DNA of 64,000 nt from Macrostomum lignano (Eukaryota). Each line of letters starts with the position of its first letter. Within the stretch, counting starts at the first letter, position 1. Location of the stretch: the NCBI GenBank assembly GCA_002269645.1, contig NIVC01000396.1:124001-188000 (forward strand). Reading direction: 5' to 3'. Made by a program: the position numbers and the translations under genes. This document shows positions 6,591 to 64,000 of this stretch, in pieces. The notes under the pieces were generated by a model. It was not told the DNA's origin. It saw only the letters and a list, made by a program, of their open reading frames with translations, and searched no databases.

Positions 6591-7467
6591 TCCAAGGTCG
6601 CGGTCACCGAGCTGTCCCAGGCGCCGGCACCCGCCTGCTGCACCCTGAACTCGTTGTCGTAGCGCAACACGCGACCGCGGTCGAAACCGAGGTCAAGGAG
6701 GTCGCCGATCTTGGCTGCGTGCTTCAGGTACTCGAGCAACTCCAACATGTCGATGGCGCCGTCTCTGAGAACAAGAAGCCTGCCGTCCTTCAGCATCTGC
6801 ATCAGCGCATTTGCATTCCCGGTAATCCAGTCACCAACAGACAGAATGTCCAGAGTGAACTGCTTCCCCGCCTGGCTCGATTTGTTCAGTGACAGCAGCC
6901 GCTTCCGAGTGCTGATGAAGTCTGGCACCCGATACGTGCTCGGATGCTGCTGTCCTGGCTGCTGCACTTCATTTGGCCCTCCAGTTGTGGGTCCCAAAAC
7001 CAAGTCCTCAAGGTATGAGTACTCACCGGGTACCGCGACATTCGGTGGTCGTTGCGGCGGCTCATCAACCGCGGGCCGGCCGCCCAGCTGCCGGATCTCA
7101 GCCTCCATGCGCGCTTGATCCCGGCGAATCGTCAGTAGGCGCAGCTGCTTCTCCGCCTCCAGCAGCTCACGGTCTAGCTCGCCAGTCCCGTGGGTCTCTC
7201 CGCCGCCCTCCTGTCGCCGGCTGTCGCCCTCCTGTCGCCGGCTGTCGCCCTACTGTTGTCTGAAGACATCTCGCTGAGCTCCTGCCTCCTTGGATGATCG
7301 CTGCTGTCACGATCGCCGATGAGTCCAGAGATCGATGCTGATTGGGCTCCTGCTGAGTCTCGTGCCTCCGCCTGTCGGAGTCTCTCTTGCAAGGTGTGTT
7401 TGTTTCCAGCAGTGTGCAGGCCACGCAAGGCGTGCGCAGCTCCTTTACAGTCATAGGGCTGTGACAT
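6584..7467 (-). pseudogene. Gag-like ORF (frameshifted) with N-terminal SAP-like motif and coiled coil
   Basis: MTVKELR / RGLHTAGNKHTLQERL split over two frames; ELDRELLEAEKQLRLL coiled coil; C-terminal RYDNEFR..AW motif resembling Ngaro gag. Confidence 0.6.
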
Positions 7468-18996: not shown

Positions 18997-20273
18997 TCCT
19001 AATACTAAAGTTGGTGCGATGATTGTTTGTTTGTTTGTCTGTTTGTTTGTGTGTTGCATAACTCCTCCTAGAATACTTGCAAGTCAGCGTTGAAACTTAT
19101 ATGGGGAAACTGCAAATTTTCCGGGGACTGCAGTGGGCTATTTCAATTTTTTATTTTCACATTTTAAGATCCCTAAAAAAGCAGAAAACTGATTTCCTAA
19201 CCTTCTCTGGACACTTTTTCTGCTCGGAGCCGAAAATTTGCATGATTTTGAGCGATTGCGCCACAACTTTCTCCTATCTCTGTAGTGTATTTTCTCGCCA
19301 GTGGGGGTTGGTCGCGTTCTCAGTGGCAGCGTGTGTACAAGCGGACCCCGGCTGAAAAATTGAACTGTGTGTATTTCGTGGGTGGTGGGTAAGTAAGCGC
19401 AATTATATGGCTATTGTGCTGAGATTCAATTGGTTTTATTATCAGCGCCTTTCAATTGACTGCCCTGTGCATTGGTTAGACAGTGAAATTCAATGAATAA
19501 ACTTGCGGGCCTCTTTAGCAGGCAGTGAACGTATGAACGTACACTCAATATTGCAATGCTATAAATCGGCAAATTTCAAACTCAGACTGTTGCTGGAGTT
19601 TTTAACTTTGAGAGGAGAGACTTATATTGCTGGAAAGATCTTTCAATGCTGATTTCGGGGATATAAATTGTTTGCTTTAAATATGAAAACTAAATGCTCT
19701 GCATTGGAAAAACTATTTCCATACTTTTAACTTTTTGCAAAGATTGTACTCATTTTAGGAGTTCAATGGTGTTCGACTGACCCCCCAACAGTTGGGGGGT
19801 TCAATTTCTAATTGCCACTGCGCATTGGAAGGGGGTCGGTCGCTGTGTATTGGAGGGTTGATTTAGATTGCGCAATATTTTTGTTAACTTTAACTGAGAC
19901 TGATACTGACTGACTTAGAAATACGAGCGTAAATTGCGAAATCTTTTGATTCAAATATCTCATTTTTTATCGGACCTTTTCAACACGCAGCTCTGTGCAG
20001 CTCCAACCCTAACCCTAACCCTAACCACCGAATCCTGAGAGTTTAGTTGTTTGACGGAGAAACTTTCGATTGGGTCCAGTTTCACGTAGAGGATTTTTGT
20101 TTCGCGGAGAGGATTTCGATCGTGTTCAGTTTCACAGAGAGGATTTTGATGGATTTGGAGAACAGTTAGATAATGGGATTCGGGTCTTGGGATTCAGCTG
20201 ATGGAGTTCAGGGAATGGAATTCCGGTGATGGGAGTTCTTCCCCTTTCTCCTCCAGAGGAGGAGTTGGCCTCG
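18997..20273 (+). mobile_element. Non-autonomous Helitron-like element D (shorter copy of C)
   Basis: Starts TCCTAATACTAAAG directly after the end of C; first about 550 bp near-identical to C; ends with hairpin CTCCTCCAGAGGAGGAG plus TTGGCCTCG. Confidence 0.75.
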
Positions 20274-40460: not shown

Positions 40461-43039
40461 TCTTTCTTTCTTTTTCTTCAGGGCTCCTCCGTATCCGACT
40501 CTGCCGATCTAGAGGGGGGCAGGCGCCCCATGCTGCGAAGTAGGCCGATGATGGCCTCCGGGGACTCCATCAAGTCCTCGGAGGCGAGCCCATGGACTGC
40601 CCGGTAGCGGTCGCCACGGGGGCAGTCGTGTAGGATGTGGCGCACCGTGTCCTCCGCGGCGCCGCAATCGGGACAGGCAGCGGAGTCCGCGATGCCAAGC
40701 CTGTGGCGGGTGCTGAAGTTAATCATGCTGGCGCCAGCGCGGAGCTGGTTTATCAGCACCTGGAGGCGGCGTGGGAGGTGAGCCGGTGGTGGTTTGGCCG
40801 GTGCCGCGTAGTCGGCGTCCATGGCCCGGCGGCGGCGGCGGAGGGCTGTCCTAGCCGCTTGTAGCTGGAGCGGCACGTGTTGTTGGTCGAGGGCGGCCGC
40901 TTCCGATGCCGCTTTGTCGGCCTCCTCATTGCCCGCCAGACCGCAGTGGGCTGGGACCCAACGGAAGGTGACCGTGCGGTTACCGGTCGTGAGACGGAGA
41001 AGAAGGTCCCAACAGTCCGACGCCACGCTGTCAGTTTGGGCCAGAGGGCCGGCACTCAGGGCCTGGACCGCGCTCAGGCTGTCGGTAGCGATGGTGACAG
41101 ACGGGGGGGCATCGTTGGAGAGAAGGAGCCTGAGGGCCTCGCGGATGGCGACCAGCTCCGCCGTAAAGCTGCTGCACCAGGCTCCGGCGGGTACGCAGTG
41201 GCGGGTGCCAGGGGCCTCCCATTGAGCGATGGCCGCTCCCCCGCCGTTCCTCGAGCCTTCGCCGACGGACCCGTCGGTCCAGATGTCGCACGGGCTGGCG
41301 GCCAGATCGGCGACGGCGGGGCTGACGCGCTCCAGCTTCTCGAGCGCCGTCATCTGGCGGGAGACCAGGGCGGTGAGAGAGGTGTCGAACTCGACCGTCT
41401 CCGCCCCTTCGGCATCCCAGGGTGGCGGGCCAAGGTGGCGAGCCGCGCGTTGGAGACGGTCAAGCTCGCAGCCGCTGCAGAGCTCCTCTGCGGATCTACG
41501 CCAGCAGCCCCTGTGGGGGCGGTTGGCATCCAAGGCCGCTCCGGGTTGGCGGCTACGCTCTTCGCCGACGTCGCCTGCCCCGTCGACCCGGTGCGCGGCG
41601 GCCGCCGTTCTGGCCTGGGCTGCGTAAGTACGGTTCTATAGGCGAGGTCGCGTGGTCTTGGTGGCGATGATGTGGGCGGGAGTGTCCGCCTGTAGCCGCG
41701 CCATACGCTCGCGCAGCATGCTGGCGCGCTCCATCGCGACATGACTGACCGGGGGGGAGCTCTGCGATGCTGAGAAGTCGGTCGGTGTGGGTGGTTTGGA
41801 CGCACCCTGTGATGAGCCGCGCACAGGCGTTTTGTTGTCGTTCAATCATGAGTCGGGAGCTCGGGGCTGCTCCCGCCAGCCAGATTCCGCTGCCGTAGTC
41901 GGCCACTGAGCGCACGGTGGCGGTGTAGACCGCTCGAAGGCCATGCGGCGGCGAATGTCTTTGGCGTGTTCGGCAAAGCCGAGATGATCGTCGAGTTTCA
42001 CCCCAAGGAAGACTGGGTGGGGCTCAAAAGCCAGTTGTTTGTTGCCGATGCTGACATTGAGCCGAGCCTTGCCTCTATTTTCCGCTGGGCTGAGGCTGAA
42101 GGTGCTGTAGCAGCATTTGCCTGGGCTCAGCAGCACTTTCCAGCGCTCGCACCAACGTTCGACCGCGTCGAGAGCCGGTTGGAGTTTGCTCGCGCAGTTG
42201 GCTAGCTTGCGGTCCAGGGCCAGCAGGGCGCTGTCATCGGCGTAGAGGCTGGTCTCGACCTCCGGGGCGGCTTCCGCGATGGCCTTTGGCAGGTCCTTCA
42301 CGTAAACCAGCCAGAGGAGCGGGGCGATGACGCTCCCTTGGGGCAGTCCCTCGCGAAACACTCGCTCCTTACTGGTGGCGCTGCCGAAGCGGACCTTCGC
42401 GCGTCTGTCATTGATGAAACTGTTAATCTATCTGAGAAAGCAGACAGGGACGCCGAGTTCGCGAAGCTTACAAATGAGGGCCTTGCGCCAGACCCTGTCG
42501 TAGGCCCTCGAGAAGTCAAGCAGGCAGAGCATTGCTCGTTGAGCCTGCGGGTCCTCTAGGCCGTCGAAGATGGCCTGGGCGATGCGAGCGATCTGCTCTT
42601 CGCACGATCGGCCCTGGCGGAATCCAGCCTGCACCGAGCTGAGCATCCCGCGGTCTTCAAGGTCGTGGCGCAGGCGGAGGTAAACCATTTTTTCGGCGAC
42701 TTTGGCTATGCAGCTAGTCAGGGCCACTGGACGATAGCTGCCGGGGTCATCCGCGCGTTTTCCGCGTTTGGGTATCGGGATGATGATGGCCCGGCGCCAC
42801 TGATGCGGACAACGTCCAGCGAGCCAGGCTTTGTTAATGAGATTCAGGAGCCTGTTCTCGCTGCGGGCCGGGAGGCGTTTTAGCATCTCGTTTGTCACCT
42901 CGTCCGGGCCTGGGCTCTTTCTGGACTTAAGGGAGCGGAGTTCGGTGATGTTGAACTCCTTGCACAGGCCTGATCTGGCGGTTGGCGTGTGTGCGCTGCA
43001 TTCTGTGCGCATGGCGGCGAAGGTGTCACGGTTGATGGG
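40461..43039 (-). mobile_element. 5'-truncated LINE (I-group/Ingi-like) with RT, RNase H and CCHC; disabled
   Basis: KSPGPD, SYRPVALTSC, QAGFRQGRSC, LDFSRAYD, GLPQGSVIAP, LYADD; RNase H WTDGS..AELVAI..TDS..WVPAHCG..NEEAD; CPDCG..HILHDC. (GAAA)-rich tail at 40461-40477; stops at 42428 and 41636 plus frameshifts; candidate TSD GCGGGGGGTT at 40451-40460 and 43040-43049. Clade call is tentative. Confidence 0.9.
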
Positions 43040-43938: not shown

Positions 43939-44262
43939 ATGGAGCAGTGGGTTGTTCTGGCCATCATTCTGGCTGTGCTGGCAGCTGGCTGCCTTGTCAG
44001 CTGCTATCTCTGCTACAAGCGCCGGTTGCAGCGTCGGTGTGAGGAGAAACTCGGAAAATCGCATGCGGCTCGGAGTGCCATCGCTGGGGCCTACGTGAAC
44101 TCGGCCATGATGCAGCAGGGGGAGCTGGGCGGCAGCGCCGATCTCATCGCCGTGGCGCCGTCCGCGGCCAGACCAGTCCGGTTTGATTATTACGGCGAGA
44201 CTGGCAGAGGCGACTCGGCGATTTTCTACACGCACGGGTCCGCGGCTGGCACCGCCGTTTGA
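43939..44262 (+). CDS. Small single-pass membrane protein, 107 aa, unknown function
   Basis: CCACCACAATGG start context; N-terminal hydrophobic helix, Cys cluster, KRR stop-transfer; GC-rich island. Could be the last exon of a longer gene (TTTAG just upstream). Confidence 0.6.
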   Translation: MEQWVVLAIILAVLAAGCLVSCYLCYKRRLQRRCEEKLGKSHAARSAIAGAYVNSAMMQQGELGGSADLIAVAPSAARPVRFDYYGETGRGDSAIFYTHGSAAGTAV

Positions 44263-45804: not shown

Positions 45805-46746
45805 ATGAGCCTGACTGCCATCGCCGAGGAGCCGCCACCGTCGCCGCCACCGTCGCCTCCGCCGAATCCGCGGCCGCAACCGGCGCCTCCTCCATCGTCG
45901 CCTTCGCCTCCACCGACGCCACCGACGCCTCCATCGCCTGCATCTCCGCAGACGCCAAACGAGTCTTCGCTGATGGACGGCGGCGAGTGCGGCGGCGGTG
46001 CCAAACCGGAGGCGGCCCAGCGGCTCGGCCTCCGGTGTCACCGCCTGCGGGCGGCCGCCTCCGCGGTGTACTATGCGGTCGCCCTGGCCGCCCTGGCCGC
46101 CTCCGCCGTCCTGCTGATCGGAGGCTTCCGCAGCGGCTCCCGCGCCGCCCTGACCGCCGGCACCCTGCTGCTGTGCGCCGCCTTCGGCCTGTGCACCAAC
46201 CGCTGCTGCCTCGGCCAGCTGCTCGGCTCTCCGCCCACCGCCGCCGCCGTCGGCACCAAGGCAGCCTCGTCTCTCTCGTCGCCGTCAACGGGGAAAAAGT
46301 CGCCGCGGAAGGAGCGCCCGGAGGCGTCGGCGTCGGTGGCCGCGATGGCCAAGCGGAGCTTCCGGCTGGCCGCGGTGGCCGCCGCAGCAGCGGCGTCGGC
46401 CTCGGACGAAACGGCAGCGGCGTCGTCTTCGCCGCCGACAACACCGCGTCGGGCGCCGCTGAACGTCAACGGCCCCCTGCTGGGCGGCGGCCGGCGCTGC
46501 TCGGCATTCGGCCTCGGCCCGGGCGACCCCGCGGCCCGCCTGGCGTTCATGCGGCAGCGCTCGGCGCCCGGCTCGGCGTCTGGCGCCGCTGCGGTTGTCG
46601 CCGGCGCCGGCGGTGGCAGCGGTGGCCGGCGGATGAGCTCCGCGCTGCAGCTGCAGCAGCTGGCCGCCTCGGCAGACGATGGCGACGATGCCGGCGGCTG
46701 CTGGATGTCATCCGGAGGCCTCGGGGAGTTTGTCGAATTCGCCTGA
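45805..46746 (+). CDS. Intronless proline-rich protein with two predicted TM helices, 313 aa, unknown function
   Basis: Long GC3-rich ORF; poly-Pro N-terminus; hydrophobic hairpin (AVYYAVALAALAASAVLLIGG / ALTAGTLLLCAAFGLC); Ser/Ala-rich tail. Confidence 0.7.
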   Translation: MSLTAIAEEPPPSPPPSPPPNPRPQPAPPPSSPSPPPTPPTPPSPASPQTPNESSLMDGGECGGGAKPEAAQRLGLRCHRLRAAASAVYYAVALAALAASAVLLIGGFRSGSRAALTAGTLLLCAAFGLCTNRCCLGQLLGSPPTAAAVGTKAASSLSSPSTGKKSPRKERPEASASVAAMAKRSFRLAAVAAAAAASASDETAAASSSPPTTPRRAPLNVNGPLLGGGRRCSAFGLGPGDPAARLAFMRQRSAPGSASGAAAVVAGAGGGSGGRRMSSALQLQQLAASADDGDDAGGCWMSSGGLGEFVEFA

Positions 46747-48656: not shown

Positions 48657-51600
48657 ATGTCAGCCTCCGCTGTTCTACATCCTTGGCATTCTCCGATTGC
48701 CGCTCTGTTGAAGCTGCTGCCGCCGCTGCTGGCGGTGGTGCTGTTGATGATGGGTCTGCCGCGGACAGGTGAGCTGATTCTCAAAGAAGATTTCTTCTTT
48801 TGGGAAGCTTTTAGGAAAGATGGGATGTCAAAGTAGGAATTATGGACGGATTGATGTAGAAAAAATAGGAAAGATAGAGGGGGAACAAGGGGGAGATTGA
48901 TGGGTGAATCCAGGAGATGAGATCCAGAGAGAGAGACGAAGGACAGAGGGAGAGATGAGAGACAGAGGGGGAGATGAGAGATTGAGAAAGAGATGAGAGA
49001 TTGAGGGGAGACAATGGACAGAGGGGGGAGGAGAGGGACAGAGGGGGAGGAGAGGGACAGAGGGGGAGATGAGGGACAGAGGGGGAGATGAGGGACAGAG
49101 GGGGAGATGAGGGACAGAGGGAGAGATGAGGGACAGAGGGGGAGATGAGGGACAGAGGGGGAGATGAGAGATTGAGGGAGAGATGAGGGACAGAGGGGGA
49201 AATGAGGGACAGAGGGGGAGGAGAGGGACAGAGGGGGAGATGAGGGACAGAGGGGGAGATGAGGGACAGAGGGAGAGATGAGGGACAGAGGGGGAGATGA
49301 GGGACAGAGGGGGAGAGATGAGGGACAGAGGGGGAGATGAGGGACAGAGGGGGAGGAGAGGGACAGAGGGGGAGGAGAGGGACAGAGGGGGAGGAGAGGG
49401 ACAGAGGGGGAGATGAGGGACAGAGGGGGAGATGAGGGACAGAGGGGGAGATGAGAGATTGAGGGGAGACAATGGACAGAGGGGGGAGATGAGGGACAGA
49501 GGGGGGAGATGAGGGACAGAGGGGGAGGAGAGGGACAGAGGGGGAGATGAGGGACAGAGGGGGAGATGAGGGACAGAGGGGGAGATGAGGGACAGAGGGG
49601 AGGAGAGGGACAGAGGGGGAGATGAGGGACAGAGGGAGAGATGAGGGACAGAGGGGGAGATGAGGGACAGAGGGGGAGATGAGGGACAGAGGGAGAGATG
49701 AGGGACAGAGGGGGAGATGAGGGACAGAGGGGGAGATGAGGGACAGAGGGGGAGATGAGGGACAGAGGGGGAGATGAGTGATTGAGGGGAGACAATGGAC
49801 AGAGGGGGAGGAGAGGGACAGAGGGGGAGGAGAGGGACAGAGGGGGAGATGAGTGATTGAGGGGAGACAATGGACAGAGGGGGAGGAGAGGGACAGATGG
49901 GGAGTGATGAGGGACAGAGGGGGAGTGATGAGGGACAGATGGGGAGTGATGAGGGACAGAGGGGGAGTGATGAGGGACAGAGGGGAGAGCACCAGAGCTG
50001 CATCGCCTACCTTTTCCGCAACCCGGCAGCTGAGACCGCCTGCAACAGCAGTTTGAACATCTCGGAGATCAGTGAGACCACACCAGCCGGTTATGGCATC
50101 TACTCAATCGACTCAAGCTACCAGAACACCCTGCTGGGACTGCCTGAGTACATCTGCTACTTTGAGCTCAGCGGCGGCTTCCTGCGACTCGCTCGCACCT
50201 TCGATCTCGAGAATTTCACCTCGTGCAGCGACGGCTCAACCATCTCGAAAGCGTCCGTGCCGTCCGCCATCACCGTCACCATTCAGTGCACATCATCTTC
50301 GGACACGGCCACCTTCCTCATCCGGCTGGTGGATGTGAACGAGTTCCCGCCAGCCTTCAGCCCGAACTACTTTGCGGTGAACGTGTCTGAGGTCTGCGCG
50401 CTTTGATGGATTGCTAATCTAGCCAAGATGCATGAATCACCAAGCAATACGTTGACCACCCCTCTCCACCCTCCAGTCAGCCAGTGTCAACACGCTCATC
50501 ACGCAGCTCAACAGTCACGTGACCGACGCCGACAAGTCCAATCAGCTGACCTTCAACTTTCAACTGACGGTGCGCAGCTCATGCATTTTTCTACTTTTTT
50601 CTTCTCCATACACTCCCTTGTCAACCCTCTGCAGACTGTCAGCTCCCAGCCTAAGGACTCCCCTACCCAGCCTACAGACTCCCCTACCCAGCCTACAGAC
50701 TCCCCTACCCAGCCTACAGACTCCCCTACCCAATCTACAGACTCCCTACCCAATCTACAGACTCCCTACCCAGCCTACAGACCCCCCTACCCAGCCTACA
50801 GACTCCCCTACCCAGCCTACAGACTCCCCTACCCAATCTACAGACTCCCCTACCCAGCCTACAGACTCCCCTACCCAATCTACAGACTCCCCTACCCAGC
50901 CTACAGACTCCTCTACCCAATCTACAGACTCCCCTACCCAGCCTACAGACTCCCCTACCCAATCTACAGACTCCCCTACCCAGCCTACAGACTCCCCTAC
51001 CCAATCTACAGACTCCCCTACCCAATCTACAGACTCCCTACCCAGCCTACAGACTCACTCAAGCGTTTCCCTTCCACCCGCTCTGCCAGAACGGCACACT
51101 GGGCAGTTTCTACATCATAGACGGCATTACATCCGGGATCGTGCGGCTGCAGCGGACGCTGGACTTTGACGCCGGACCGCGCCAGTACATCATGACCGTG
51201 GCGGCCTCCGAGCTGCCGACCGAGCCGGCCAGCCAGCCGGCGGCGCTGACGGGCTTCGCCACCCTGGTGGTGAACGTCTTGGACTACGACGATCAAAATC
51301 CTGAGTTCACTCAGAACTCGTACTCGCTGTACTTTATGGAGAATGTGAGTGACGTCACTAGCATGTGTTTATTAAACCGCTTCAGGGCTCCGGTTCAGGG
51401 GAACCTGTAAAACTTTAGTAGTTACCAAGCAAAGTAACTCCAGGTTTGTGGGCACCCGGGTTGCAACGCCTTTGGTGACAATGTCCCACAGCCAGCGCTC
51501 GTATCATCTTTCCTCAGGTGATTGATTGGTTAAAACCACGAGACATTTTTCGGGTCCAAAAAGGTTCACTTAGTCAAAGAATTGTTTGACCTCTCTTTTG

Positions 51601-54600
51601 TTCTGAGGTGAGATTCTGTATCCAAGAAATGCTCGCAAATATCAATAGACTCGTACGATTTTCGGCCAACCGAGAGTCTTGGCAGCGTTGAGACGCTTTT
51701 GAAGAGCATCTACATTATCTAGAATGGCGAGTACGTCACCCTGTTAGATGAGCAGACCTTTTAAATCAGAGAGGCTGCTCTCCATCATGCGTTGAAGAAT
51801 GCAACCGCGATTCAGACCTCTAGAAGTGTTGACGACGAAGTGTAACTGATGTCCTTCAGAGGGTACCATAATTTCTACTTTCAACAAAGGGTCCAGCCTC
51901 TTTCTGCTTAGTGATCTCTTCATCCTCCAGTTGTCATATCTAGCCGTGCAAACTAAAGCAAAAGGCAGTGAAAGCGGCTGATTGAACCCCCCCTCCCACG
52001 GCTCCATCCAGAACACCGCTTACATGAACTCGCCGCTGACGGCCAGCCCACTGCTGCTGGCCCTCGACCAGGATGTGGGCATCAACGAGACCATAAATTA
52101 TGCTATCGTTTCCGGTATGCTAACAGTTGTTTGACGTGGTGATTTGTCTTAATAATAAATAAATTCTATTGAAGTAAAAGAACTGAGAAATTCTACCCCA
52201 ATTTTCCAGCTTATTGGTGGAATTCGGCAGGTAATAATATATATTCATTGAGAACTAATCCAAGTATTCTATTAATGAGTTATCTAATACTAAACAGGGT
52301 GTCAAACGGGCGTGCCACTTTATTGCTAGGGTCGTAGTTTTGGTTACCAGGCCACCAGTTTAGTTGCCAGGGCCACCAGTTTGGTTACCGGGGCCACCAG
52401 TTTGGTTTCCAGGGCCACCAGTTTGGTCACCAGGGCCACCAGTTTGGTTGCCAGGGCCACCAGTTTAGTTGACAGAGCCATCCGTTTAGTTGCCAGGGCC
52501 ACCAGTTTAGTTGGCAGGGCCACCAGTTTGGTTGCCAGGGCCACCAGTTTGGTTGCCAGGGCCACCATTTTGGTTGCCAGGGCCACCAGTTTGGTTTCCA
52601 GGGCCACCATTTTGGTTACCAGGGCCCCCAGTTTGGTTGCCAGGGCCACCAGTTTAGTTGCCTTTCAGATAAAAAATTAATAATTGCGCTTTTGTACGGG
52701 TCTCGTGTTCGAACATTTAGAGCTGCTAATTTTTAGCATTTTGTTTTACTGCTTTAATTCGCTTAGTTTTGTGCGTAACAATGTGCTTTAAATATAATTG
52801 TAAATCTTTTTTACAACTCACTCAGTCTCACAAAATTAAAACTTTCAGTTTTTTTTCCTTCAAACAATCTCGCCTTCTCAAATGCCATTCCGCACACTCA
52901 GGCTCGCAGATTGACAACACCAGCTTCATCGCCATCAACTCCACCACGGGCCAGTTCAGCATCGTCAGCCTCATCGACAGGGAGAGTCTGCCAGCCAGCC
53001 AGCTGTTTGTGCTGGTCAAGGTACGCGATCCCGATCCCGATCCCGAATCCCGATCCCGAATCCCGATCCCGAATCCCGATCCCGAATCCCGATCCCGAAT
53101 CCCGATCCCGAATCCCGATCCCGAATCCCGATCCCGAATCCCGATCCCGAATCCCGATCCCGAATCCCGATCCCGAATCCCGATCCCGAATCCCGATCCC
53201 GAATCCCGATCCCGAATCCCGATCCCGAATCCCGATCCCGAATCCCGATCCCGAATCCCGATCCCGAATCCCGATCCCGAATCCCGATCCCGAATCCCGA
53301 TCCCGAATCCCGATCCCGAATCCCGATCCCGAATCCCGATCCCGAATCCCGATCCCGAATCCCGATCCCGAATCCCGATCCCGAATCCCGATCCCGAATC
53401 CCGATCCCGAATCCCGATCCCGAATCCCGATCCCGAATCCCGATCCCGAATCCCGATCCCGAATCCCGATCCCGAATCCCGATCCCGAATCCCGATCCCG
53501 AATCCCGATCCCGAATCCCGATCCCGAATCCCGATCCCGAATCCCGATCCCGAATCCCGATCCCGAATCCCGATCCCGAATCCCGATCCCGAATCCCGAT
53601 CCCGAATCCCGATCCCGAATCCCGATCCCGAATCCCGATCCCGAATCCCGATCCCGAATCCCGATCCCGAATCCCGATCCCGAATCCCGATCCCGAATCC
53701 CGATCCCGAATCCCGATCCCGAATCCCGATCCCGAATCCCGATCCCGAATCCCGATCCCGAATCCCGATCCCGAATCCCGATCCCGAATCCCGATCCCGA
53801 ATCCCGATCCCGAATCCCGATCCCGAATCCCGATCCCGAATCCCGATCCCGAATCCCGATCCCGAATCCCGATCCCGAATCCCGATCCCGAATCCCGATC
53901 CCGAATCCCGATCCCGAATCCCGATCCCGAATCCCGATCCCGAATCCCGATCCCGAATCCCGATCCCGAATCCCGATCCCGAATCTTGATCCCGAATCCC
54001 GATCCCGAATCCCGATCCCGAATCCCGATCCCGAATCCCGATCCCGAATCCCGATCCCGATCCCGAATCCCGATCCCGAATCCCGATCCCGAATCCCGAT
54101 CCCGAATCCCGATCCCGAATCCCGATCCCGAATCCCGATCCCGAATCCCGATCCCGAATCCCGATCCCGAATCCCGATCCCGAATCCCGATCCCGATCCC
54201 GAATCCCGATCCCGAATCCCGATCCCGAATCCCGATCCCGAATCCCGATCCCGAATCCCGATCCCGAATCCCGATCCCGAATCCCGATCCCGAATCCCGA
54301 TCCCGATCCCGAATCCCGATCCCGAATCCCGATCCCGAATCCCGATCCCGAATCCCGATCCCGAATCCCGATCCCGAATCCAATCTGGAATCTCAAATCC
54401 CAATCTGGAATCTCGAGTCTCAATCTGGAATCTCAAATCTCAATCTGGAATCTAAATCCCAATCCGGAATCCCAAATCCCGAATCAGAATGCAGTTGGCC
54501 AAATATCCCTAAAATATCCCGCAGGGCTATCAAACCGACAAGCCCACCACCCGGGTGGCGCTGGCCCTGGTGCTGGTGACGGTCGGAGACAGAAACGACA

Positions 54601-57600
54601 ACGCTCCGGTCATGTCTGCAACAGACTACTCAGCCACCATAGTAGAGAATTCGCCCGCTGGAACTTTTGTCATTGGCGTGTCCGCCACCGACAGAGACCT
54701 GGTGAGCTCAACTCTCGGCTCGTTGTTGCATCATGTACTTCGAATCCTGGAAATACCGCTAGCCTTACGGAGATTTCCAGTCACGGGAATTTCACAGGGA
54801 TTTCCATTCTTATGGGATTTCCAGTCTTGCGGGTTTTCCAATTTTGTGGGATTTCCTGTCTCGAGTGATTTCCAGTCTTTGTGGGATTTCCTGTCTCGAG
54901 GGATTTCTTGCCTTGAGGGATTTCCTGTCTCGAGGGATTTCCAGTCTTTGTGGGATTTCCTGTCTCGAGGGATTTCTTGCCTTGAGGTATTTCCTGTCTC
55001 GAGGGATTTCCAGTCTTTGTGGGATTTCCTGTCTCGAGGGATTTCCTGTCTCGAGCGATTTCCAGTCTCGAGGGATTTCCAGTCTCGAGGGATTTCCAGT
55101 ATTGTGGGATTTCCTGTCTCGAGGGATTTCCAGTTTTGTAGGACTTCCAGTTTTGTAGGATTTCAAGTTTTGTGGGATTTCCAGTTTTGTAGGATTTCCA
55201 GTCTTGTGGGATTTCCAGTTTTGTGGGATTTCCAGTCTTGTGGGATTTCCAGTTTTGTGGGATTTCCAGTTTTGTGGGATTTCCAGCTTTGTGGGATTTC
55301 CAGTCTTGTGGTATTTCCAGTTTTGTGGGATTTCCAGTCTTGTGGGATTTCCAGTTTTGTGGGATTTCCAGATTTGTGGGATTTCCAGTCTTGTGGGATT
55401 TCCAGTTTTGTGGGATTTCCAGTCTTGTGGGATTTCCAGTTTTGTGGGATTTCCAGTCTTGTGGGATTTCCAGTTTTGTGGGATTTCCAGTTTTGTAGGA
55501 TTTCCAGTTTTGTGGGATTTCCAGTCTTGTGGGATTTCCAGTTTTGTGGGATTTCCAGTTTTGTGGGATTTCCAGCTTTGTGGGATTTCCAGTCTTGTGG
55601 TATTTCCAGTTTTGTGGGATTTCCAGTTTTGTGGGATTTCCAGCTTTGTGGGATTTCCAGTCTTGTGGGATTTCCAGTTTTGTGGGATTTCCAGATTTGT
55701 GGGATTTCCAGTCTTGTGGGATTTCCAGATTTGTGGGATTTCCAGTCTTGTGGGATTTCCAGTTTTGTGGGATTTCCAGATTTGTGGGATTTACAGTTTT
55801 GCGGGATTTCCAGTCCTTTGGGATTTCCAGTCTTGTGGGATTTCCAGTTTTGTGGGAGTTCCAAATTCGTGGTCCCAAGACTCTGAATCATCCCAATGAC
55901 CGTTGCAGGGTGAGAACTCCACAGTCAGCTATCTGCTGGCCGATCCCAGTGGCGCCTTTCAAATCGATCCCAACAGCGGTCACGTGACTGTGGCCAACGC
56001 CAGCCTGCTGGACCGGGAGGCAACGCCAGAGTTCAATGTTACAGTGAGTTCAGTTTTTCCCACTGACCTACTGAAAGTACCAAGACTGGATGCGGGGTCG
56101 CCTGGTATCTGACTTGGGATCAGGAAGGGATGAGTAGCGTAGTGTTAAAGTCCCAGGTTCGATTCCGCCCGCCACCACATAGACCTTGGAGTGTCTGTCG
56201 GGATAAGTCGGGATTCGGGACGGATAAGTCGGGATTCGGGATGGATAAGTCGGGATTCGGAGTGGATAAGTTGCCCCTTCGACTAGTTAATTAACCGAAC
56301 AGGTCAATAGCTATACGCAGCAACCAATGGCCTTTCGAAGGTCTGGTCGGAAGAGACGGCCACGCCCGAGCGTTTTGCCTCGACGCCGTCCCGCCTGACC
56401 ATCCGCCTGACCGACGTCAACGACAACTCGCCGGTCTTCGCCAACGCCTCGGGCATCAGCATCAGCCTGGACCGCTCGGTCGCTACGCCTGGAGCCGCCC
56501 TGCACACGCTGGTTGCTACGGACGCGGATTCTGGAATTAACGGTCAGCTGACATTCAGTATAGTCTTTGTCAGCGTGCCCGGGGCTGAGTCTTTGTTCAA
56601 CTTGGACTCGGGCAGCGGACTGCTGACGGCAGCGGCTGGACTGTCGTCTGCGCCGCAGGATCTGTGAGCCAACAGGAGGGTGCATTTTGATGGAGCTGGT
56701 GCCATTTTTGTCTGTGTTTGACCTGTGTCAGTTTGAGAAGAGTGCCAGTTTGAGAAGAGTGCCAGTTTGAGAAGAGTGCCAGTTTGAGAAGAGTGTCAGT
56801 TTGAAAAGATTATCAGTTTGAGCAGAATAGCAGTTTGAGAAGAGTGCCAGTTTGAGAAGAGTGCCAGTTTGAGAAGAGTGCCAGTTTGAGAAGAGTGTCA
56901 GTTTGAGAAAAGTGTCAGTTTGAAAAGATTATCAGTTTGAGCAGAATAGCAGTTTGAGCAGAGCGTCAGCTTGAGAAGAGTGACACCTTACCTGATCAAT
57001 GCACAAAAACCTTCACCAGCTTCGTCTTAAACGTCGTGGCGGAGGACCGTGCGGAGCCGTCGTCCGCACGGCGCCGTTCCACCGTCTCGGTGTCGGTGCG
57101 CCTGACGAGCTCCACCAGCAGCAGCGCCAGCACCGTGGCGACCACTTCGTCAGACGCTGTCACCACCAGCAGCAGCCAGGCGCCTACTTCAACAACCAGC
57201 AGTTCGACGACAAGCACCACGACGACAACGACGACGACCTCCACGACTTCAACAATGGCAACTTCTGCTGCGCCAGCGGAGTCGTGGAACGCCTCAGTAG
57301 CCGCATCGGCAGTCTGGATGATTAACGACAGCCACGCAACGGTTGAGGTGATGTCCATGTCTTTAATAATATATATATATATATATAATACAGCCTCCTG
57401 TATGCAGGGTAGGGAGGGGCTCTGGGCAGCTTGACTCTGGTACAAAAAATAATGCAATGCCCCACTCTGACTACTGACTTCCAGCTTCGAACCACACAGA
57501 TCAGCAGCAGTGGCAATCAGACTGTTACCATGGAAACCGTTGTCCTGCCAGTCAACTCCAGTCTTATCGCCCAGGCGCCAACTACCGAAGCGCCGTCGAC

Positions 57601-59547
57601 CTCGACGAGCGGCTCAACCTCGCTGACAACGCCCGAGTCGGTCACGTCGTTGGACTCGCTGAACGCCACGACGTACGAAGCTGCAACAACAAGCGAGACG
57701 ACAGCGGCACCGACGGAGCAGCTGGTCCAGCCGGCGCCGCTGGGGCTGATCGTGGCCTGCGCCCTGCTGGCGGTGATCGCATCCGCGCTGGGCCTGCTGC
57801 TCGGCTGGTTCCTGTTCGAGCGGTCCCGCCTGAAGGCGCTGGCCGCGGAGCGTCTGGCAACCATCGAGAGCCTGCAGCAGAAGACCAACCCCATCTTCTC
57901 CAACGGGCAGCACCCGCCGCCGCCGGAAGTCGGGCCGGAGTCGTGAGTTGCTTCCTCGGGAAATTTTGATTTAGTGTATTTATCAGTGATCGAATTTATT
58001 CACAAAACAGACTACTTATTTGCGACTTCAAGTAGTATGAAGACGAGAGGGGACGGGGCGCCATGAACGGCGACATGAAGAGTCAACGGCGATCTGAGCC
58101 AGAATGGGGACAAGGAGAGCCAGAATGGGGACAAGGAGAGCCAGAATGGGTAAAGGAGCGCCAGAATGGGGACAAGGAGAGCCAGAATGGGTAAAGGAGC
58201 GCCAGAATGGGGACAAGGAGCGCCAGACCGGGGACAAGGAGCGCCAGAATGGGGACAAGGAGCGCCAGAATGGGGACAAGGAGAGCCAGAATGGGGACAA
58301 GGAGAGCCAGAATGGGACAAGGAGCGCCAAAATGGGGACAAGGAGAGCCAGAATGGGGACAAGGAGCGCCAGAATGGGGACAAGGAGCGCCAGAATGGGG
58401 ACAAGGAGCGCCAGAATGGGGACAAGGAGCGCCAGAATGGGGACAAGGAGAGCCAGAATGGGTAAAGGAGCGCCAGAATGGGACAAGGAGCGCCAGAATG
58501 GGTAAAGGAGCGCCAGAATGGGACAAGGAGCGCCAAAATGGGGACAAGGAGAGCCAGAATGGGGACAAGGAGCGCCAGACCGGGGACAAGGAGCGCCAGA
58601 ATGGGTAAAGGAGCGCCAGAATGGGGACAAGGAGAGCCAGAATGGGGACAAGGAGCGCCAGACCGGGGACAAGGAGCGCCAGAATGGGGACAAGGAGCGC
58701 CAGAATGGGGACAAGGAGAGCCAGAATGGGGACAAGGAGAGCCAGAATGGGGACAAGGAGAGCCAGAATGGGGACAAGGAGAGCTAGAATGGGGACAAGG
58801 AGAGCTAGAATGGGGACAAGGAGAGCCAGAATGGGGACAAGGAGAGCCAGAATGGGGACAAGGAGCGCCAAAATGGGGACAAGGAGAGCCAGAATGGGGA
58901 CAAGGAGAGCTAGAATGGGGACAAGGAGAGCTAGAATGGGGACAAGGAGAGCCAGAATGGGGACAAGGAGAGCCAGAATGGGACAAGGAGCGCCAAAATG
59001 GGGACAAGGAGAGCCAGAATGGGGACAAGGAGCGCCAGACCGGGGACAAGGAGCGCCAGAATGGGGACAAGGAGCGCCAGAATGGGGACAAGGAGCGCCA
59101 GAATGGGACAAGGAGCGCCAGACCGGGGACAAGGAGCGCCAGAATGGGGACAAGGAGCGCCAGAATGGGGACAAGGAGCGCCAGAATGGGACAAGGAGCG
59201 CCAGAATGGGACAAGGAGCGCCAGAATGGGACAAGGAGCGCCAGAATGGGTAAAGGAGCGCCAGAATGGGACAAGGAGCGCCAGAATGGGGACAAGGAGA
59301 GCCAGAATGGGTAAAGGAGCGCCAGAAAAAGGAAGTAGACAGGTCGCTAGGGGGTTTTCAGGCTCTAGTAGAGAATCATCCTTCATCCCCCCGAGTCTAA
59401 CTCAGTCCAGCTCGAATCGCTCACAGTGCCCTCAGCGGCAGCCACCCGCAGCCAGACGGGTCAGCGGCGATCTACGTGTCCCAGCAGCTGGCGCCAGACC
59501 CGGCCTACCAGACTCTCTCCGTGTCCATGCCCGTCTCGGACTTTTAG
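48657..59547 (+). CDS. Cadherin-related protein: signal peptide, 5 EC repeats, Thr/Ser-rich stalk, TM, short tail (isoform 1)
   Basis: Exons 48657-48768 (signal; link to the next exon uncertain), about 49996-50391, 50477-50569, 51090-51344, 52012-52114, 52902-53020, 54525-54701, 55909-56043, 56311-56663, 57020-57347, 57485-57942, 59406-59547. All junctions from 50391 onward are GT-AG and phase-consistent. Motifs DVNEFPP, DYDDQNP, DRNDNAP, DVNDNSP, TDAD, DQD, DRE. Confidence 0.88.
48940..49985. repeat. 19-bp purine-rich minisatellite (GAGGGACAGAGGGGGAGAT)n
   Basis: Direct reading; abuts the first EC exon. Confidence 0.95.
50655..51055. repeat. 21-bp intronic minisatellite (CAGCCTACAGACTCCCCTACC)n
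   Basis: Direct reading. Confidence 0.95.
52345..52660. repeat. 21-bp intronic minisatellite (GGGCCACCAGTTTGGTTGCCA)n
   Basis: Direct reading. Confidence 0.95.
53027..54380. repeat. 13-bp intronic satellite (CCCGAATCCCGAT)n
   Basis: Nearly perfect 6+7-bp unit starting 6 nt after the splice donor. Confidence 0.97.
54775..55862. repeat. 17-bp intronic minisatellite (GTGGGATTTCCAGTYTT)n
   Basis: Direct reading. Confidence 0.95.
56135..56275 (+). mobile_element. tRNA-derived SINE-like remnant in a cadherin intron
   Basis: A-box-like TAGCGTAGTGTT (56135) and B-box GGTTCGATTCC (56156-56166), abnormally close together, followed by three 21-bp repeats. Confidence 0.45.
56730..56985. repeat. 17-bp intronic minisatellite (CAGTTTGAGAAGAGTGC)n
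   Basis: Direct reading. Confidence 0.9.
58095..59325. repeat. 20-21-bp intronic minisatellite (GGGGACAAGGAGCGCCAGAAT)n
   Basis: Direct reading. Confidence 0.95.
59406..59547 (+). CDS. Cadherin terminal exon, option 1 (tail ends ...MPVSDF)
   Basis: CTAACTCAG acceptor, phase 2 matching the donor TC|GTGAGT at 57942; TAG at 59545-59547; AATAAA at 59673. Confidence 0.75.
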
Positions 59548-60186
59548 AACTTCTTTTATATATAGTCATCCTACATAATTGTATTTTTAATAACGCATTA
59601 CTAACAAACATAGCCTGTTTCCTAAATCGAAATTCTAATTCCATTCGAATGTTTTTTGTTTTTTTGAAGTGCAATAAAATATTTTTTTTTTTTTCAAAGC
59701 TTAGTTACTGCATGCAGTTGTTGAGTGCAACTCAAAATTCCCTAAAACAGTTAGTCATAGTAGTAGTTTTCGATGTACTTTTGGTGGCTTCTGTTGTTTT
59801 CGGCTGATGCCTGGTGTGATGTCAGAGAAGGAGACGGCTCTAGAGCGGGCACGAGACACCAGAGGTAGATAAGGGATTTCAAAAGGGGACAAATGACTCC
59901 AGAAGGGGGCAATAGGCGCCAAAAAGGGCACAAGGTGCGTCAGAAGGGCACAAGGTACGTCAGAAGGGCACAAGGTGCATCAGAAGGACACAAGGGACGC
60001 CAGAATGACACGGGGCGCTAGAAGATCGGGTAATTATTGAGACCATTTTTTCAGCAGCCTTTGTATTTGTGTTAGATTCTAACTGGCCTTGCTTAATACA
60101 GTAGTCACTAATTTGCTTTGAACGCTTTCTATTCTAACACAAAAACTAATTTTTAAAAACTATTTGCTGCAACAATACTGCCGCAG

Positions 60187-60325
60187 CGCTGACGGTGCCG
60201 ACACCGGCGACGCCACCGAGATGGGCGTCCGGCGCAGTCAGACGGACCTTGTCGAATGCGGCCAGTTCGAGGCGGAGGCGACGGCGGGGGGCACCGCTGC
60301 GGAGCCGGCCTGCATGCCCGAGTGA
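60187..60325 (+). CDS. Cadherin terminal exon, option 2 (tail ends ...PACMPE)
   Basis: CCGCAG acceptor with upstream CTAAC/CTAAT, phase 2, GC-rich open frame to TGA at 60323-60325; AATAAA at 60496. Confidence 0.6.
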
Positions 60326-61069
60326 GTTGAAGGCTGTTCGTTTAACTAATCGATAATGTCTATTTTTAGCATATTGATTTTCCACGAGCCTGGGTAAGGC
60401 TAACTGTCTAATAGAAGTCACGTGACACGCCTTTATTGGTGTGAGGAATGTACATTGCCCCCCGTACAGGGAGGGACAGGTAACCCGAGAATGGCAATAA
60501 AACAAGATAAGCAGTAACAAAGGCCGCACGCAGCGGTTCCGTGAAAGGGCGGGAACGATTATAGGTAGATAAATTCCAGCAAGTTGATGCTGCGCGCCAA
60601 TACTACTAACTGAAGTTTAATAGTAGCTTTAAAGGGTAAATATTGCAACTATTTACTTCTAAATTAAACATTTTTAAATATCTGTTGTCTCGATTTTCAC
60701 AGTGTAGAGACAGTTTAAATGATGCTGGGTAAGCAAGCGGTAAAAATAAGCTGCCCAATCAATCCATTGAGTCTACCCGTTATGTCTGTTTATTAATTAT
60801 TCGTCAGTGTTTTTTGTTGTTGTATTCTTCCTTTGAAAAAAACATTGCTCTTTCGAATCAGGCTTTGCTTTAAAGTACGAGTGGTATACTGAAGTATTTC
60901 CTTTGGGGACCTTTAAATATCTAACGAGCTATCGCAGCCACCTCACTCCACGATCGATCCATCTGATTGGCTGCCGTATCGCCAACCAATAAGCGCGAGT
61001 TGGGGGTTGGCGCAGCAAATCTCAAACTGTACACTCTAAAGCAGGCATCTACGCATTTGAAAATTTCAG

Positions 61070-61247
61070 CCCCGCGGCTTGGCCAAGCAGCCCCGATGGA
61101 GGCCAGTCGCACGTGCCGGCAATCTATCAGCTGTTTGATGACAATTTGGCGGTCACAGCTGAGTACGTGCGGCACCAACAGGGCGCCGACCATCCCAAGT
61201 ACCACCGCGCACTGGCGGCCTTTGTCACTCTGCGAACCAAACTGTAG
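61070..61247 (+). CDS. Cadherin terminal exon, option 3 (tail ends ...LRTKL)
   Basis: TTTCAG acceptor, phase 2, GC-rich open frame to TAG at 61245-61247; class I PDZ-type C-terminus T-K-L. Confidence 0.65.
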
Positions 61248-62115
61248 TGCAATGTTGGATGGCCGTACATTATAAATGCATGCTTTCCCTGCCTTCTTGC
61301 TTATCCTTTCACTCTAATCTTGTTTATTATTAATATCACCTGATGAAGGAATATTCTCTTTTCTTAACTTCTATTTATCACCAATGCTTGCAATTTCTAG
61401 TCAGAGCTTCTGAGCACAAAGAATCTATCTAAGAAATAGACACTTAATATTTGTATTGTATGAAAAATCTATTTATTTTTTTCTGAAAAAATGTAAATCG
61501 TACCCTTGTTTTTGTTGCTTTATTAAGAATTTTTTCATTAAGATATATTGGATGAAAAATCGATAAGAAAGACAATTATCGAATTTAGCCTTTTTCATTA
61601 AAAGAACTCTGGCTCTTATTTACAAAGTGTTAAAATTACCCAAAAATAGCTTCAGCAATACAAAACCAGATTCAGAAGGATGAGAATTTATTGAAGTAGA
61701 AAATTACAAAATCAAAATAATGGTTACTCAATTTACCATAGCAGCAGTTTATCAAAGACTACTCAAGTAGAAGGGTGGAGAATTTCATTTCTTAGAAAAT
61801 CTTAGGAGGCAGATTTTACTGAAAAATACATTACGGAGAGAGCATTGTTTCTCGTCCATAATGTTATAAAGTAGTCCTATAATATACAAGTAGTCCTTTA
61901 TATGCAATTATTGCACACAGTTTTTTAGGCATTTTTTGGATAAATCAAAATGATGAAACAAAAGCAAAACTGAGAGGAATATGTTTTATGGCACTGCCGA
62001 ACTTCAACTTTAAAATGACATAATATCACTTCTGGGTTGAAGGAAATAAAAAAGTACCCAGAATTTCGTATCGTAAATAAACTCTTTTTAAATAAACTTC
62101 TTTTGGGCCAACTTG

Positions 62116-62730
62116 TCACTCTAGCAATGGCTCCCTAATCATCAGCCAGTCAATAGTCTATGGCCCAAACTGTCACTCTAGCAATGGCTTTCATCCCATC
62201 CATCATCAGCCAATCAATAGTCTATGGCCCAACCTGTCACTCTAGCAATGGCTCCCATCCCATCCATCATCAGACACTCGATAGTCTATGGCCCAACCTG
62301 TCACTCTAGCAATGGCTCTCATCCGATCCATCATCAGCCACTCAATAGTCTATGGCCCAAACTGTCACTCTAGCAATGGCTTTCATCCCATCCATCATCA
62401 GCCACTCAATAGTCTATGGCCCAATTTGTCCCTCTAGCGATGGCTCTCAGACCATCATCAGCCACTAAATAGTCTATGGCCTATCTCTAGCGCTGGCTCC
62501 CATCCTATCCATCATCAGCCACTCAATAGTCTATGGCCCAACCTGTCACTCTAGCAATGGCTCTCATCCAATCCATCATCAGCCAGTCAATAGTCTATGG
62601 CCCAACCTGTCCCTCTAGCAATGGCTCCCATCCCATCCATCATCAGCCACTAAATAGTCTATGGCCCAAACTGTCACTCTAGCAATGGCTCCCATCCGAT
62701 TCATCATCAGCCACTCAATAGTCTATGGCC
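62116..62730. repeat. About 64-bp minisatellite directly 3' of the CD36-like stop codon
   Basis: About 10 units TAGTCTATGGCCCAA...CATCAGCCACTCAA. Confidence 0.9.
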
Positions 62731-62737
62731 GAGCCTA

Positions 62738-64000
62738 TCAGGCCGTAGCAACGGGCTCCTCCTGTGCCAGCAGCCCAGTCCGATCGCCTTCGCCGACGTC
62801 CCTGACTGCTGCATCACTGTCCTGGACTTCGCTGCCTGCCTCCGTGACAGCGCAATTAACTGAACCGTCCCCGCCGACGCTTACACCGACGCCATTGACG
62901 ACGTTTTCAACGGCTCCCGACGTCGGTGACGAATCAGCCTGGGTGGTTTTTGCGTTTCTCCTTCGCTGCAATAGCAGCAGAAACGTTGCCACAGTTGTTA
63001 CTAAGCTTCCCAGGCCCATGGCAACCCCGATAGCGATTTTGGCAACCAACTGCGGGGTCAGCAGAAGGTCACGCAACTGACTAGCCGTGTCGACGTCAAC
63101 GACGGCGCTCTCGTTTATCCACAGCATCGGGTAGAACTGGGACCGGAGATTCGGCGCGAACGCGGCGTAGGCGGGACCCGCGTCCAGCTGAAGGTTGATC
63201 TGCAGCCGCTTGTACAGCTGCAGCACCGCCCCACTCAGCGGCTCGATGTCCACGTAGGTGCGGTGGGCGCGGTCGTCAGGGTACAGGCCGCGTACCGAGG
63301 CCTGGGAGGAAAAGGGATTTGTATCTTGATTAAGATGGGTATCAAGATTGGGATTGGGGTCTGGATTGGGATGGGGATCTGGATTGGGATGGGGATCTGG
63401 ATTGGGATGGGGATCTGGATTGGGATGGGGATCTGGATTGGGATAGGGATCTGGATTGGGATTGGGATCTGGATTGGGATGGGGATCTGGATTGGGATTG
63501 GGATCTGGATTGGGATGGGGATCTGGATTGGGATAGGGATCTGGATTGGGATTGGGATCTGGATTGGGATGGGGATCTGGATTGGGATTGGGATCTGGAT
63601 TGGGATGGGGATCTGGAATGGGATGGAGATCTGGGTTGGGATCTGGACGCAGACAGGGAATCCAATTACCTGAATCTCGGGAGCAGCCAGCAGGAAGTGC
63701 GGCAAAGAGGCCACCACAGGTATGTGAAGGCCGTCGAGCCTTTTGCACTCGGTGAGGTTGAACAGGCCGGCGGGAAGACAGTTACCGGCCGGGGTGCAAT
63801 AGCCCGCATTGTCCGGGTTCTCGCTGGCGTTGGCCAGCAGCCTGTCCGGACCGGTGAATCGCCACAACCGGAGGAGGCCGCCAGCCGCATCAACCTCGCT
63901 GTCGAAGACTCCATAGAGTGAGCGGCAGATGTCGGAGATGAAGGCGGGCAGCAGGGCGGATTTGTTAAGGAACGGCGGAGCCAGACTGCCGTCGGAGCCG
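62738..64000 (-). CDS. CD36/scavenger receptor class B family protein, last two exons (gene continues beyond the window)
   Basis: Exons 64000-63670 and 63301-62738 (phase-0 GT-AG intron). Motifs GSDGSLAPPF, DICRS, YC...C.PAGLFNLTEC, SLPHFL, DIEPLSG, KRLQIN, YPMLWINES, C-terminal TM helix. Confidence 0.93.
63335..63645. repeat. Hexamer-based intronic satellite (GGATTG/GGATGG/GGATCT)
   Basis: Fills the last intron of the CD36-like gene. Confidence 0.95.

Follow-up and report, generated by a model that had tools for sequence, protein, structure and literature searches.

The window analysed here is a stretch of 64,000 nucleotides (nt) of the flatworm Macrostomum lignano (assembly Mlig_3_7, contig NIVC01000396.1), and its plus strand carries a cadherin gene, BOX15_Mlig028117g1, whose transmembrane (TM) exon is followed by three isolated GC-rich islands, called tails 1, 2 and 3 below. 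The gene lies between ANAPC10 upstream and a convergent CD36-family gene downstream, whose coding sequence ends on the minus strand at window 62738. An original prediction, made from the letters of the window, had read the three islands as three alternative last exons that give one cadherin three cytoplasmic tails, in the manner of the CD1/CD2/CD3 switch of PCDH15. Our analysis suggests instead that tail 1 forms one end of the gene and that tails 2 and 3 may together form a second. The elements of the gene, all on the plus strand, are as follows (window coordinates; a slash marks a splice cut).

48657..48768 (+): exon 1, with the start codon and the signal peptide MSASAVLHPW…PRT; donor ACAG/GTGAGC; the N-terminus of the GenBank protein P0122 maps here.
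50030..57347 (+): ectodomain exons, holding 5 cadherin repeats and the start of the serine/threonine-rich (S/T-rich) mucin-like region (GT-AG model, P0122 and P0001), in the two sets that follow.
~50030-50391, 50477-50569, 51090-51344, 52012-52114 and the microexon ~52208-52230 (+): first set of ectodomain exons.
~52902-53020, 54525-54701, 55909-56043, 56341 (or 56311)-56663 and 57020-57347 (+): second set of ectodomain exons.
57485..57942 (+): TM exon, with the mucin-like end, the TM helix, a 44-residue juxtamembrane segment and a phase-2 end (translation; all GenBank models).
57943..57948 (+): GTGAGT donor of the TM exon, at which the proposed choice branches; 1 of 7 GTGAGT on the plus strand of the window.
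58098..59327 (+): 21-bp minisatellite that fills the intron from the TM exon to tail 1, 59 copies with 92% matches (Tandem Repeats Finder); not coding.
59427..59547 (+): tail 1, the annotated last coding exon and proximal 3' end, (S)ALSGSHPQPDGSAAIYVSQQLAPDPAYQTLSVSMPVSDF and a stop codon (C-termini of P0122, P0001 and P0121).
59673..59678 (+): AATAAA, likely polyadenylation (poly(A)) signal of the annotated isoform, 126 nt past the tail 1 stop; kept in the homeologous copy L001.
60187..60321 (+): tail 2, an unannotated candidate exon of 135 nt and 45 codons, (S)ADGADTGDATEMGVRRSQTDLVECGQFEAEATAGGTAAEPACMP(D), open in the required phase and intact in three copies.
60322..60327 (+): consensus donor GTGAGT closing tail 2, containing TGA (hexamer scan).
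61070..61247 (+): tail 3, an unannotated candidate terminal coding exon, PAAWPSSPDGGQSHVPAIYQLFDDNLAVTAEYVRHQQGADHPKYHRALAAFVTLRTKL and a stop codon, in frame after tail 2 or directly after the TM exon.
61597..62096 (+): candidate distal poly(A) signals (ATTAAA at 61597; AATAAA at 62045, 62076 and 62091), from a pattern scan only, such hexamers being common in the AT-rich stretch.

The encoded protein is predicted to consist of a signal peptide, about five repeats, a mucin-like stretch, one TM helix and a juxtamembrane segment. Its tandem repeats carry calcium-binding motifs (DVNDNSPVF and DRNDNAPV in the translation), which places it in the cadherin superfamily; the Pfam Cadherin family (PF00028) matches three stretches of the homeologous protein P0001 with E = 2.4e-35, and a PDB search returned 105 cadherin chains at E < 1e-10. 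As read from the sequence, the N-terminus is hydrophobic and the putative TM stretch is PLGLIVACALLAVIASALGLLLGWFLF, followed by ERSR. The S/T-rich mucin-like region covers ~210 residues (exons 57020-57347 and 57485-57700) with the TM helix next to it, and the 44 juxtamembrane residues end in …PPPPEVGPE. The earlier description of the protein as a mucin-cadherin is supported, with a predicted single pass through the membrane.

In our exon model all introns are GT-AG and in frame, and the GenBank proteins agree with it except for one microexon and two splice-site choices. The GenBank models hold a 7-codon microexon, AYWWNSA (~52208-52230), which was absent from our first exon model, and take the acceptor 56340/56341 rather than 56310/56311. 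Three residues, QDL, are missing from the GenBank model of the window copy only, which implies a donor 9 nt upstream of GTGAGC (positions 56655 and 56663); the implied intron would start with GC (…GCGCC/GCAGGA), which points to a GC-AG intron or else to an artefact of annotation.

The gene is already annotated. An ectodomain query assembled from the plus-strand exons found 'hypothetical protein BOX15_Mlig000043g1' at 96% identity, and the 90% cluster of that protein also contains the GenBank proteins Mlig010783g1 and Mlig028117g1. We assign the window gene to the latter because its protein (P0122, 865 aa) agrees with the window wherever the gene copies differ, and because the gene range at its locus (L003, NIVC01000396.1:162657-193547) is equal in length to window 48657-59547. 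The homeologous genes are Mlig000043 and Mlig010783, and the homeologous copies, at loci L001 and L002, are ~98-99% identical to the window copy in DNA, introns included, in keeping with the karyotype duplication known from the sequenced line (PMC5730564). GenBank proteins carrying tail 1 are 865-868 aa long. A literature search on the three gene identifiers found no paper.

The TM exon closes with a phase-2 donor, GAG TC/GTGAGT at 57942/57943, as the original prediction had stated. Its description of the islands was also borne out by reading the sequence: each of the three GC-rich islands follows a CAG, is open in the phase-2 frame and yields the peptide quoted for it, and the acceptors at 59427 (and 59406), 60187 and 61070 are all open in the phase of this donor. 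The islands are not fragments of a high-copy repeat, a possibility that the prediction had raised against itself, since each is single copy per locus. The AATAAA hexamers at 59673 and 60496 are both present. A fourth, tail-less form had been derived from read-through of the TM donor into its TGA; such a form is the arithmetic result of any phase-2 GTGAGT donor and is no evidence of an isoform.

The annotated model, which derives from transcripts, already has tail 1 as its last exon. The GenBank models were built on a genome-guided transcriptome (StringTie/TACO and a de novo assembly, with open reading frames (ORFs) called by TransDecoder; PMC5730564), so the tail 1 junction has RNA support. 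The three GenBank proteins all end in …GPES/ALSGSH(P/S)QPDGSAAIYVSQQLAPDPAYQTLSVSMPVSDF, with C-termini identical in structure, and these ends set the acceptor at ctcacag/T, 59426/59427, which is 21 nt downstream of 59405/59406. The latter had been the acceptor of the original prediction and has to be given up, since the transcriptome-derived models of all 3 copies begin tail 1 at 59427 and the 21 nt between the two candidate acceptors (59407-59427) have a non-coding-like codon score of -3.9. We also considered tail 1 as an internal exon feeding tail 2, as in an old gene model of this locus (P0128, see below). This is unlikely: the in-phase GTs in tail 1, read by eye as GTCAGC, GTCCCA and GTCCAT, carry C or T at intron position +3, and P0128 is a frameshifted prediction.

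Tail 2 had been credited with a stop codon of its own, as had tails 1 and 3. That holds for tails 1 and 3. The TGA of tail 2 (60323-60325), by contrast, sits within a consensus donor, CCCGA/GTGAGT, with the cut at 60321/60322. The hexamer GTGAGT occurs 7 times on the plus strand of the 64 kb; three of these occurrences are cadherin donors consistent with GenBank (51345, 56044 and 57943), and a fourth ends tail 2. With the looser pattern GTRAGY, 6 of the 8 occurrences in 48-62 kb are donors of this kind. Among the window's 567 ORFs of 45 codons or more, the closing TGA lies within GTGAGT in only 2, which to judge from the coordinates should be those of the TM exon and tail 2. This arrangement, a TGA within the donor, had been noticed by the original prediction at the TM exon but overlooked at tail 2; it also ends the exon at 56663. 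Thus, a stop of the form G-TGA-GT that ends an open island is best treated by default as a splice donor.

With this donor, tail 2 enters and leaves in phase 2, and when spliced to 61070 it would read …ACMP-D-PAAWPSS…TLRTKL and stop. The claim of three alternative last exons is therefore not supported, since tail 2 ends in a perfect GTGAGT, measures 45 codons and joins tail 3 in the frame in which tail 3 looks coding. Because tail 2 closes with a donor and keeps tail 3 in frame, we count two 3' ends, not three, and propose that tail 2 is a predicted internal exon, possibly a cassette exon, of the distal 3' end.

We assessed coding character with codon-usage log-odds trained on 1614 codons of the window's genes, using the six frames and 1000 dinucleotide shuffles as controls. 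Tails 1, 2 and 3 score +12.3, +14.1 and +8.4, and in each the phase-2 frame is the best of six and lies above 1000/1000 shuffles. Their per-codon scores fall inside the leave-one-out range of known exons, and GC at third codon positions is 0.87, 0.86 and 0.69 for tails 1, 2 and 3, compared with 0.78 in the training set. Minus-strand coding of the islands was rejected because of lower scores in the minus frames, most of which are interrupted by stops. In a sliding scan of 57400-62800 the islands are the sole non-repeat coding-like peaks on the plus strand after the TM exon, and no further coding-like segment was found on that strand between tails 1 and 2. The 21-bp minisatellite (GDKERQN-type), which is open in all three plus-strand frames, scores falsely as 'coding', so the codon score has its limits. 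A 20-bp repeat related to this minisatellite lies between tails 1 and 2, at 59924-60005.

Upstream of its first ATG, tail 2 has 11 codons with a summed score of +7.2, which is in the top 0.17% of flanking non-coding windows and higher per codon than the rest of the exon, so translation should enter tail 2 from an upstream exon. In tail 3 the codon score is concentrated in 61131-61244. An internal acceptor at 61130/61131, used by a second old gene model (P0129), was rejected because it is in the wrong phase for both phase-2 donors. Any of the hexamers at 61597-62096 could act as the poly(A) signal of a distal 3' end. If both were used, this distal 3' untranslated region (signals at 61597-62096, plus strand) and that of the CD36-family gene, with minus-strand AATAAA at 61323-61687, would overlap.

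The three gene copies point in the same direction. Across the 434 nt of candidate exons there are 0 indels among them, compared with 19 indel events in ~2400 flanking columns, and variable sites amount to 1.15% of the candidate exons compared with 2.2% of the flanks. Splice sites, frames and the tail 3 stop are intact in 3/3 copies. Between L001 and the window copy, all 3 differences in tail 3 are synonymous, and L002 is identical to the window copy there; in the known exons of the cadherin gene the tally is 22 synonymous to 11 non-synonymous. Together, tails 2 and 3 appear to have the properties of coding exons and to fit together in frame.

The ends …VSDF of tail 1 and …RTKL of tail 3 fit the class I PDZ-ligand consensus [S/T]-x-hydrophobic, as the original prediction had said, and …CMPE, the 'end' of tail 2, fits no end motif, as expected of an internal exon. 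We estimate from amino-acid frequencies that a random C-terminus fits the class I consensus in ~4% of cases, and two such ends in a row are suggestive for that reason; a PCDH15-like choice between cytoplasmic ends is plausible because SDF and TKL both match. Candidate motifs of the YxxΦ type can also be read, YQTL in tail 1 and YQLF in tail 3. The AIY shared by tails 1 and 3, noted in the original prediction, is at chance level: the local alignment score of the two tails is below the mean of shuffles (p = 0.62), which also led us to reject the idea that they are duplicated exons.

We then propose that BOX15_Mlig028117g1 has two alternative 3' ends after its TM exon, tail 1 or tail 2 plus tail 3; on sequence evidence, this model may be right or wrong with about equal probability. 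In the proximal form, which is the annotated one, the donor at 57942/57943 is joined to 59427 and the transcript would be cleaved after the AATAAA at 59673, giving the 865-residue protein with a 40-residue distal tail that ends in …SMPVSDF. In the distal form, the tail 1 exon and its poly(A) site would be skipped, the same donor would be joined to 60187 and 60321 to 61070, and cleavage would follow one of the signals at 61597-62096, giving a 104-residue tail that ends in …TLRTKL. Skipping of tail 2 would still yield the TKL end, because 135 nt is a multiple of three. Both forms would have the ectodomain, the TM helix and the 44 juxtamembrane residues in common and differ in the distal cytoplasmic tail. 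Alternative last exons reflect competition between splicing and polyadenylation, the proximal exon with its poly(A) signal lying inside the intron of the distal form. The mechanism here would be an ordinary choice of this kind, and nothing specific sets the M. lignano case apart from it.

Several observations weigh against the proposed distal end. In 3/3 copies the annotation has the tail 1 form alone and is empty from there to the CD36-family gene; the transcript-derived models show the tail 1 junction only, and what supports tails 2 and 3 comes from sequence. The GenBank pipeline kept only isoforms of at least 75% of the major one (PMC5730564), which makes the missing annotation of tails 2 and 3 weak evidence. 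The first 20 codons of tail 3 have a neutral codon score. The three candidate exons pooled show 3 synonymous and 2 non-synonymous differences among the copies, and constraint tests are low in power because the homeologs are 98-99% identical even in introns. Finally, a paralogue with 49% identity (P0005, P0006 and P0127) exists as truncated WormBase-ParaSite models only, a profile search to ~1500 aa found no GenBank model of it, and deep conservation of the tails cannot be read from it.

Database relatives of the tails are few. An exhaustive HMMER search with tail 3 against 1.84 billion representatives found relatives in M. lignano only, and the tails have no meaningful match in Pfam. The matches to tail 3 were two real ones, P0128 and P0129, both at homeologous loci of the cadherin, and two chance matches to repeat proteins. 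P0128 (A0A1I8FDA2) corresponds to window 57660-63920 and runs through the TM exon, part of tail 1, tails 2 and 3 and then antisense CD36. P0129 (A0A1I8FTW7, 72 aa; window 60221-61244) starts at the tail 2 ATG and uses the tail 2 GTGAGT donor. Independent gene finders thus also read tails 2 and 3 as coding, which is not transcript evidence; as support these two entries are further discounted by being old automatic WormBase-ParaSite models on an older assembly, frameshifted and poor. Their UniProt names, 'J domain-containing protein' for P0128 and 'Transposase' for P0129, have no basis in the mapped sequence.

One alternative is that only tail 1 is used, and that tails 2 and 3 are former exons or rarely included noise which still look coding because they were lost recently. 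It draws on tail 1 being the sole annotated form in three copies, on the lack of homologues that would show long-term conservation, and on a divergence between copies too small to prove selection. Against this, frames, splice sites and the stop are intact without an indel in three copies, codon bias matches that of known exons in strength, and tail 3 supplies a second C-terminus of the class I PDZ type; in addition, three of three synonymous changes in tail 3 have p of about 0.02 for neutral sequence. We regard this alternative as unlikely.

A second alternative is that tails 2 and 3 form a separate two-exon gene between the cadherin and CD36, for example of 92 residues from the ATG at 60221. 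Such a gene may have its own promoter, or may be the downstream gene of a polycistronic unit, with a spliced leader trans-spliced onto 60187. Both processes are documented in M. lignano, where 38.8% of genes are trans-spliced and ~7% of transcriptional units are polycistronic precursors (PMC5730564). The in-frame ATG in tail 2, at which P0129 starts, would suit this reading. TransDecoder at its usual length cut-off misses ORFs of fewer than 100 residues, which could explain why such a gene is not annotated. It is hard to reconcile with the 11 codons upstream of the ATG, whose coding score per codon exceeds that of the codons downstream, and with the sliding scan, which finds no coding-like first exon upstream. 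Chance would have to account for both the 3n length and the agreement in phase with the cadherin donor, and the product, which has no Pfam domain and whose tail 3 part has no relatives outside M. lignano, resembles a disordered tail with a PDZ-type end. A separate gene is in our view distinctly unlikely.

The originally predicted arrangement of three mutually exclusive last exons off 57942, with the tail 2 donor unused, the TGA at 60323-60325 read as a stop and polyadenylation after the AATAAA at 60496, is improbable: all acceptors are in the right phase, an AATAAA lies 170 nt past tail 2, and truncated forms are known to arise by intronic polyadenylation when a donor is left unspliced, but the 'stop' lies in a perfect GTGAGT, of whose other six plus-strand occurrences 3 are GenBank-consistent donors, the 135-nt length and frame match with tail 3 would be a coincidence of ~1 in 9, …CMPE has no end motif, and an AATAAA within 170 nt of AT-rich DNA is near chance, with 3 AATAAA or ATTAAA on this strand in 59541-61000.

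The model of two alternative ends can be compared with known cadherins. The CD1, CD2 and CD3 isoforms of PCDH15 differ only in the cytoplasmic domain and have the PDZ-binding ends …STSL, …NTAL and …MTKL, and exon 37 is common to CD2 and CD3, so that the alternative ends are not all single exons there (PMC7532178). PCDH15 and the M. lignano protein, with its predicted isoforms and predicted single pass, are alike in being cadherins with a common TM and juxtamembrane part and alternative 3' exons. They differ in that the exhaustive search with tail 3 found no sequence relationship to PCDH15 tails, and in that the M. lignano gene has ~5 repeats rather than 11 and probably two ends rather than three. 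The ectodomain does not single out PCDH15 either: in the PDB ranking PCDH15 comes 15th, at 4e-32 compared with 5.5e-82 for CELSR1, and the best non-Macrostomum matches are fragments of CELSR2, PCDH23, FAT4 and clustered protocadherins at ~25-32% identity. An orthologue of PCDH15 was rejected on these grounds, since CELSR, clustered protocadherins and CDH23 are as close or closer and the repeats number ~5. Of the PCDH15-like tail switch first proposed, the choice of cytoplasmic ends remains plausible, whereas the three terminal exons are not supported. An ancestral tail-switching system finds no support, since the relatives of tail 3 are in M. lignano only and the ectodomain resembles CELSR, clustered protocadherins and CDH23 at least as much as PCDH15.

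In overall build, and in build only, the protein is also like CDHR5, the partner of CDHR2 in the vertebrate brush border: few repeats, an S/T-rich mucin-like region, a TM helix and a short, unstructured-looking tail with a PDZ-type end. In CDHR5 the mucin-like region lies next to the membrane, and the short tail ends in a canonical PDZ-binding motif that apical targeting requires (PMC10916864). Its known splice forms differ from the M. lignano case by varying the extracellular mucin-like repeats, not the tail. CDHR2 is among the distant matches at 25-29% identity, beside many other cadherins, and CDHR5 is not among the matches listed. Membership in the PCDH15 or the CDHR5 family is not supported. 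It is tempting to speculate that the locus is a Macrostomum-specific switch of a mucin-type cadherin between two unrelated tails, with an optional 45-codon cassette, which would engage distinct PDZ scaffolds or sorting adaptors and would be an independent invention in the style of PCDH15; we hold this broader interpretation to be tentative and rather doubtful.

The rest of the window is rich in repeats, which fits the repeat-rich genome described for M. lignano (PMC5730564). Further minisatellites in the cadherin region, mostly in introns, lie at 48800-50000, 50650-51050, 52340-52680, 53020-54450 and 54750-55890; one of 64 bp x 9.4 lies at 62138-62730, just beyond the CD36 stop codon, and one of 18 bp x 17.8 at 63323-63642, in a probable CD36 intron. 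The minisatellites of the window create very long spurious ORFs on both strands. Retroelement remains are found between the genes, on the minus strand, at 40478-43012, with RNase H (PF00075, 1.7e-15) and two reverse-transcriptase pieces (PF00078), and at 5180-7108, with a weak match to an RT-associated RNase H-like family (PF17917, 5.7-6.5 kb) below the curated cut-off. Upstream of the cadherin there are two GC-rich frames on the plus strand: an open frame of 313 aa at 45805-46746 (GC 0.74) and a 107-aa frame at 43939-44262 with a hydrophobic N-terminal helix, both without a Pfam match. For the part that locus L003 covers, no gene is listed at these two frames. Two plus-strand ORFs ~2.8 kb apart, at 16245-16523 and 19077-19355, have an identical 92-residue sequence; thus, the strongly skewed repeat at ~18-19 kb has a duplicated segment on either side.

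Alternative last exons that alter receptor tails are common, so the mechanism proposed here is not unusual and touches no long-standing open question. Use of the distal exons would mean that an isoform with a different cytoplasmic end and a second PDZ-type motif is absent from the public annotation of this cadherin and its two homeologs. If the model is true, tail switching would occur in an adhesion receptor of a non-vertebrate, and the gene would be a small and testable case of it in a flatworm for which transgenesis is available.

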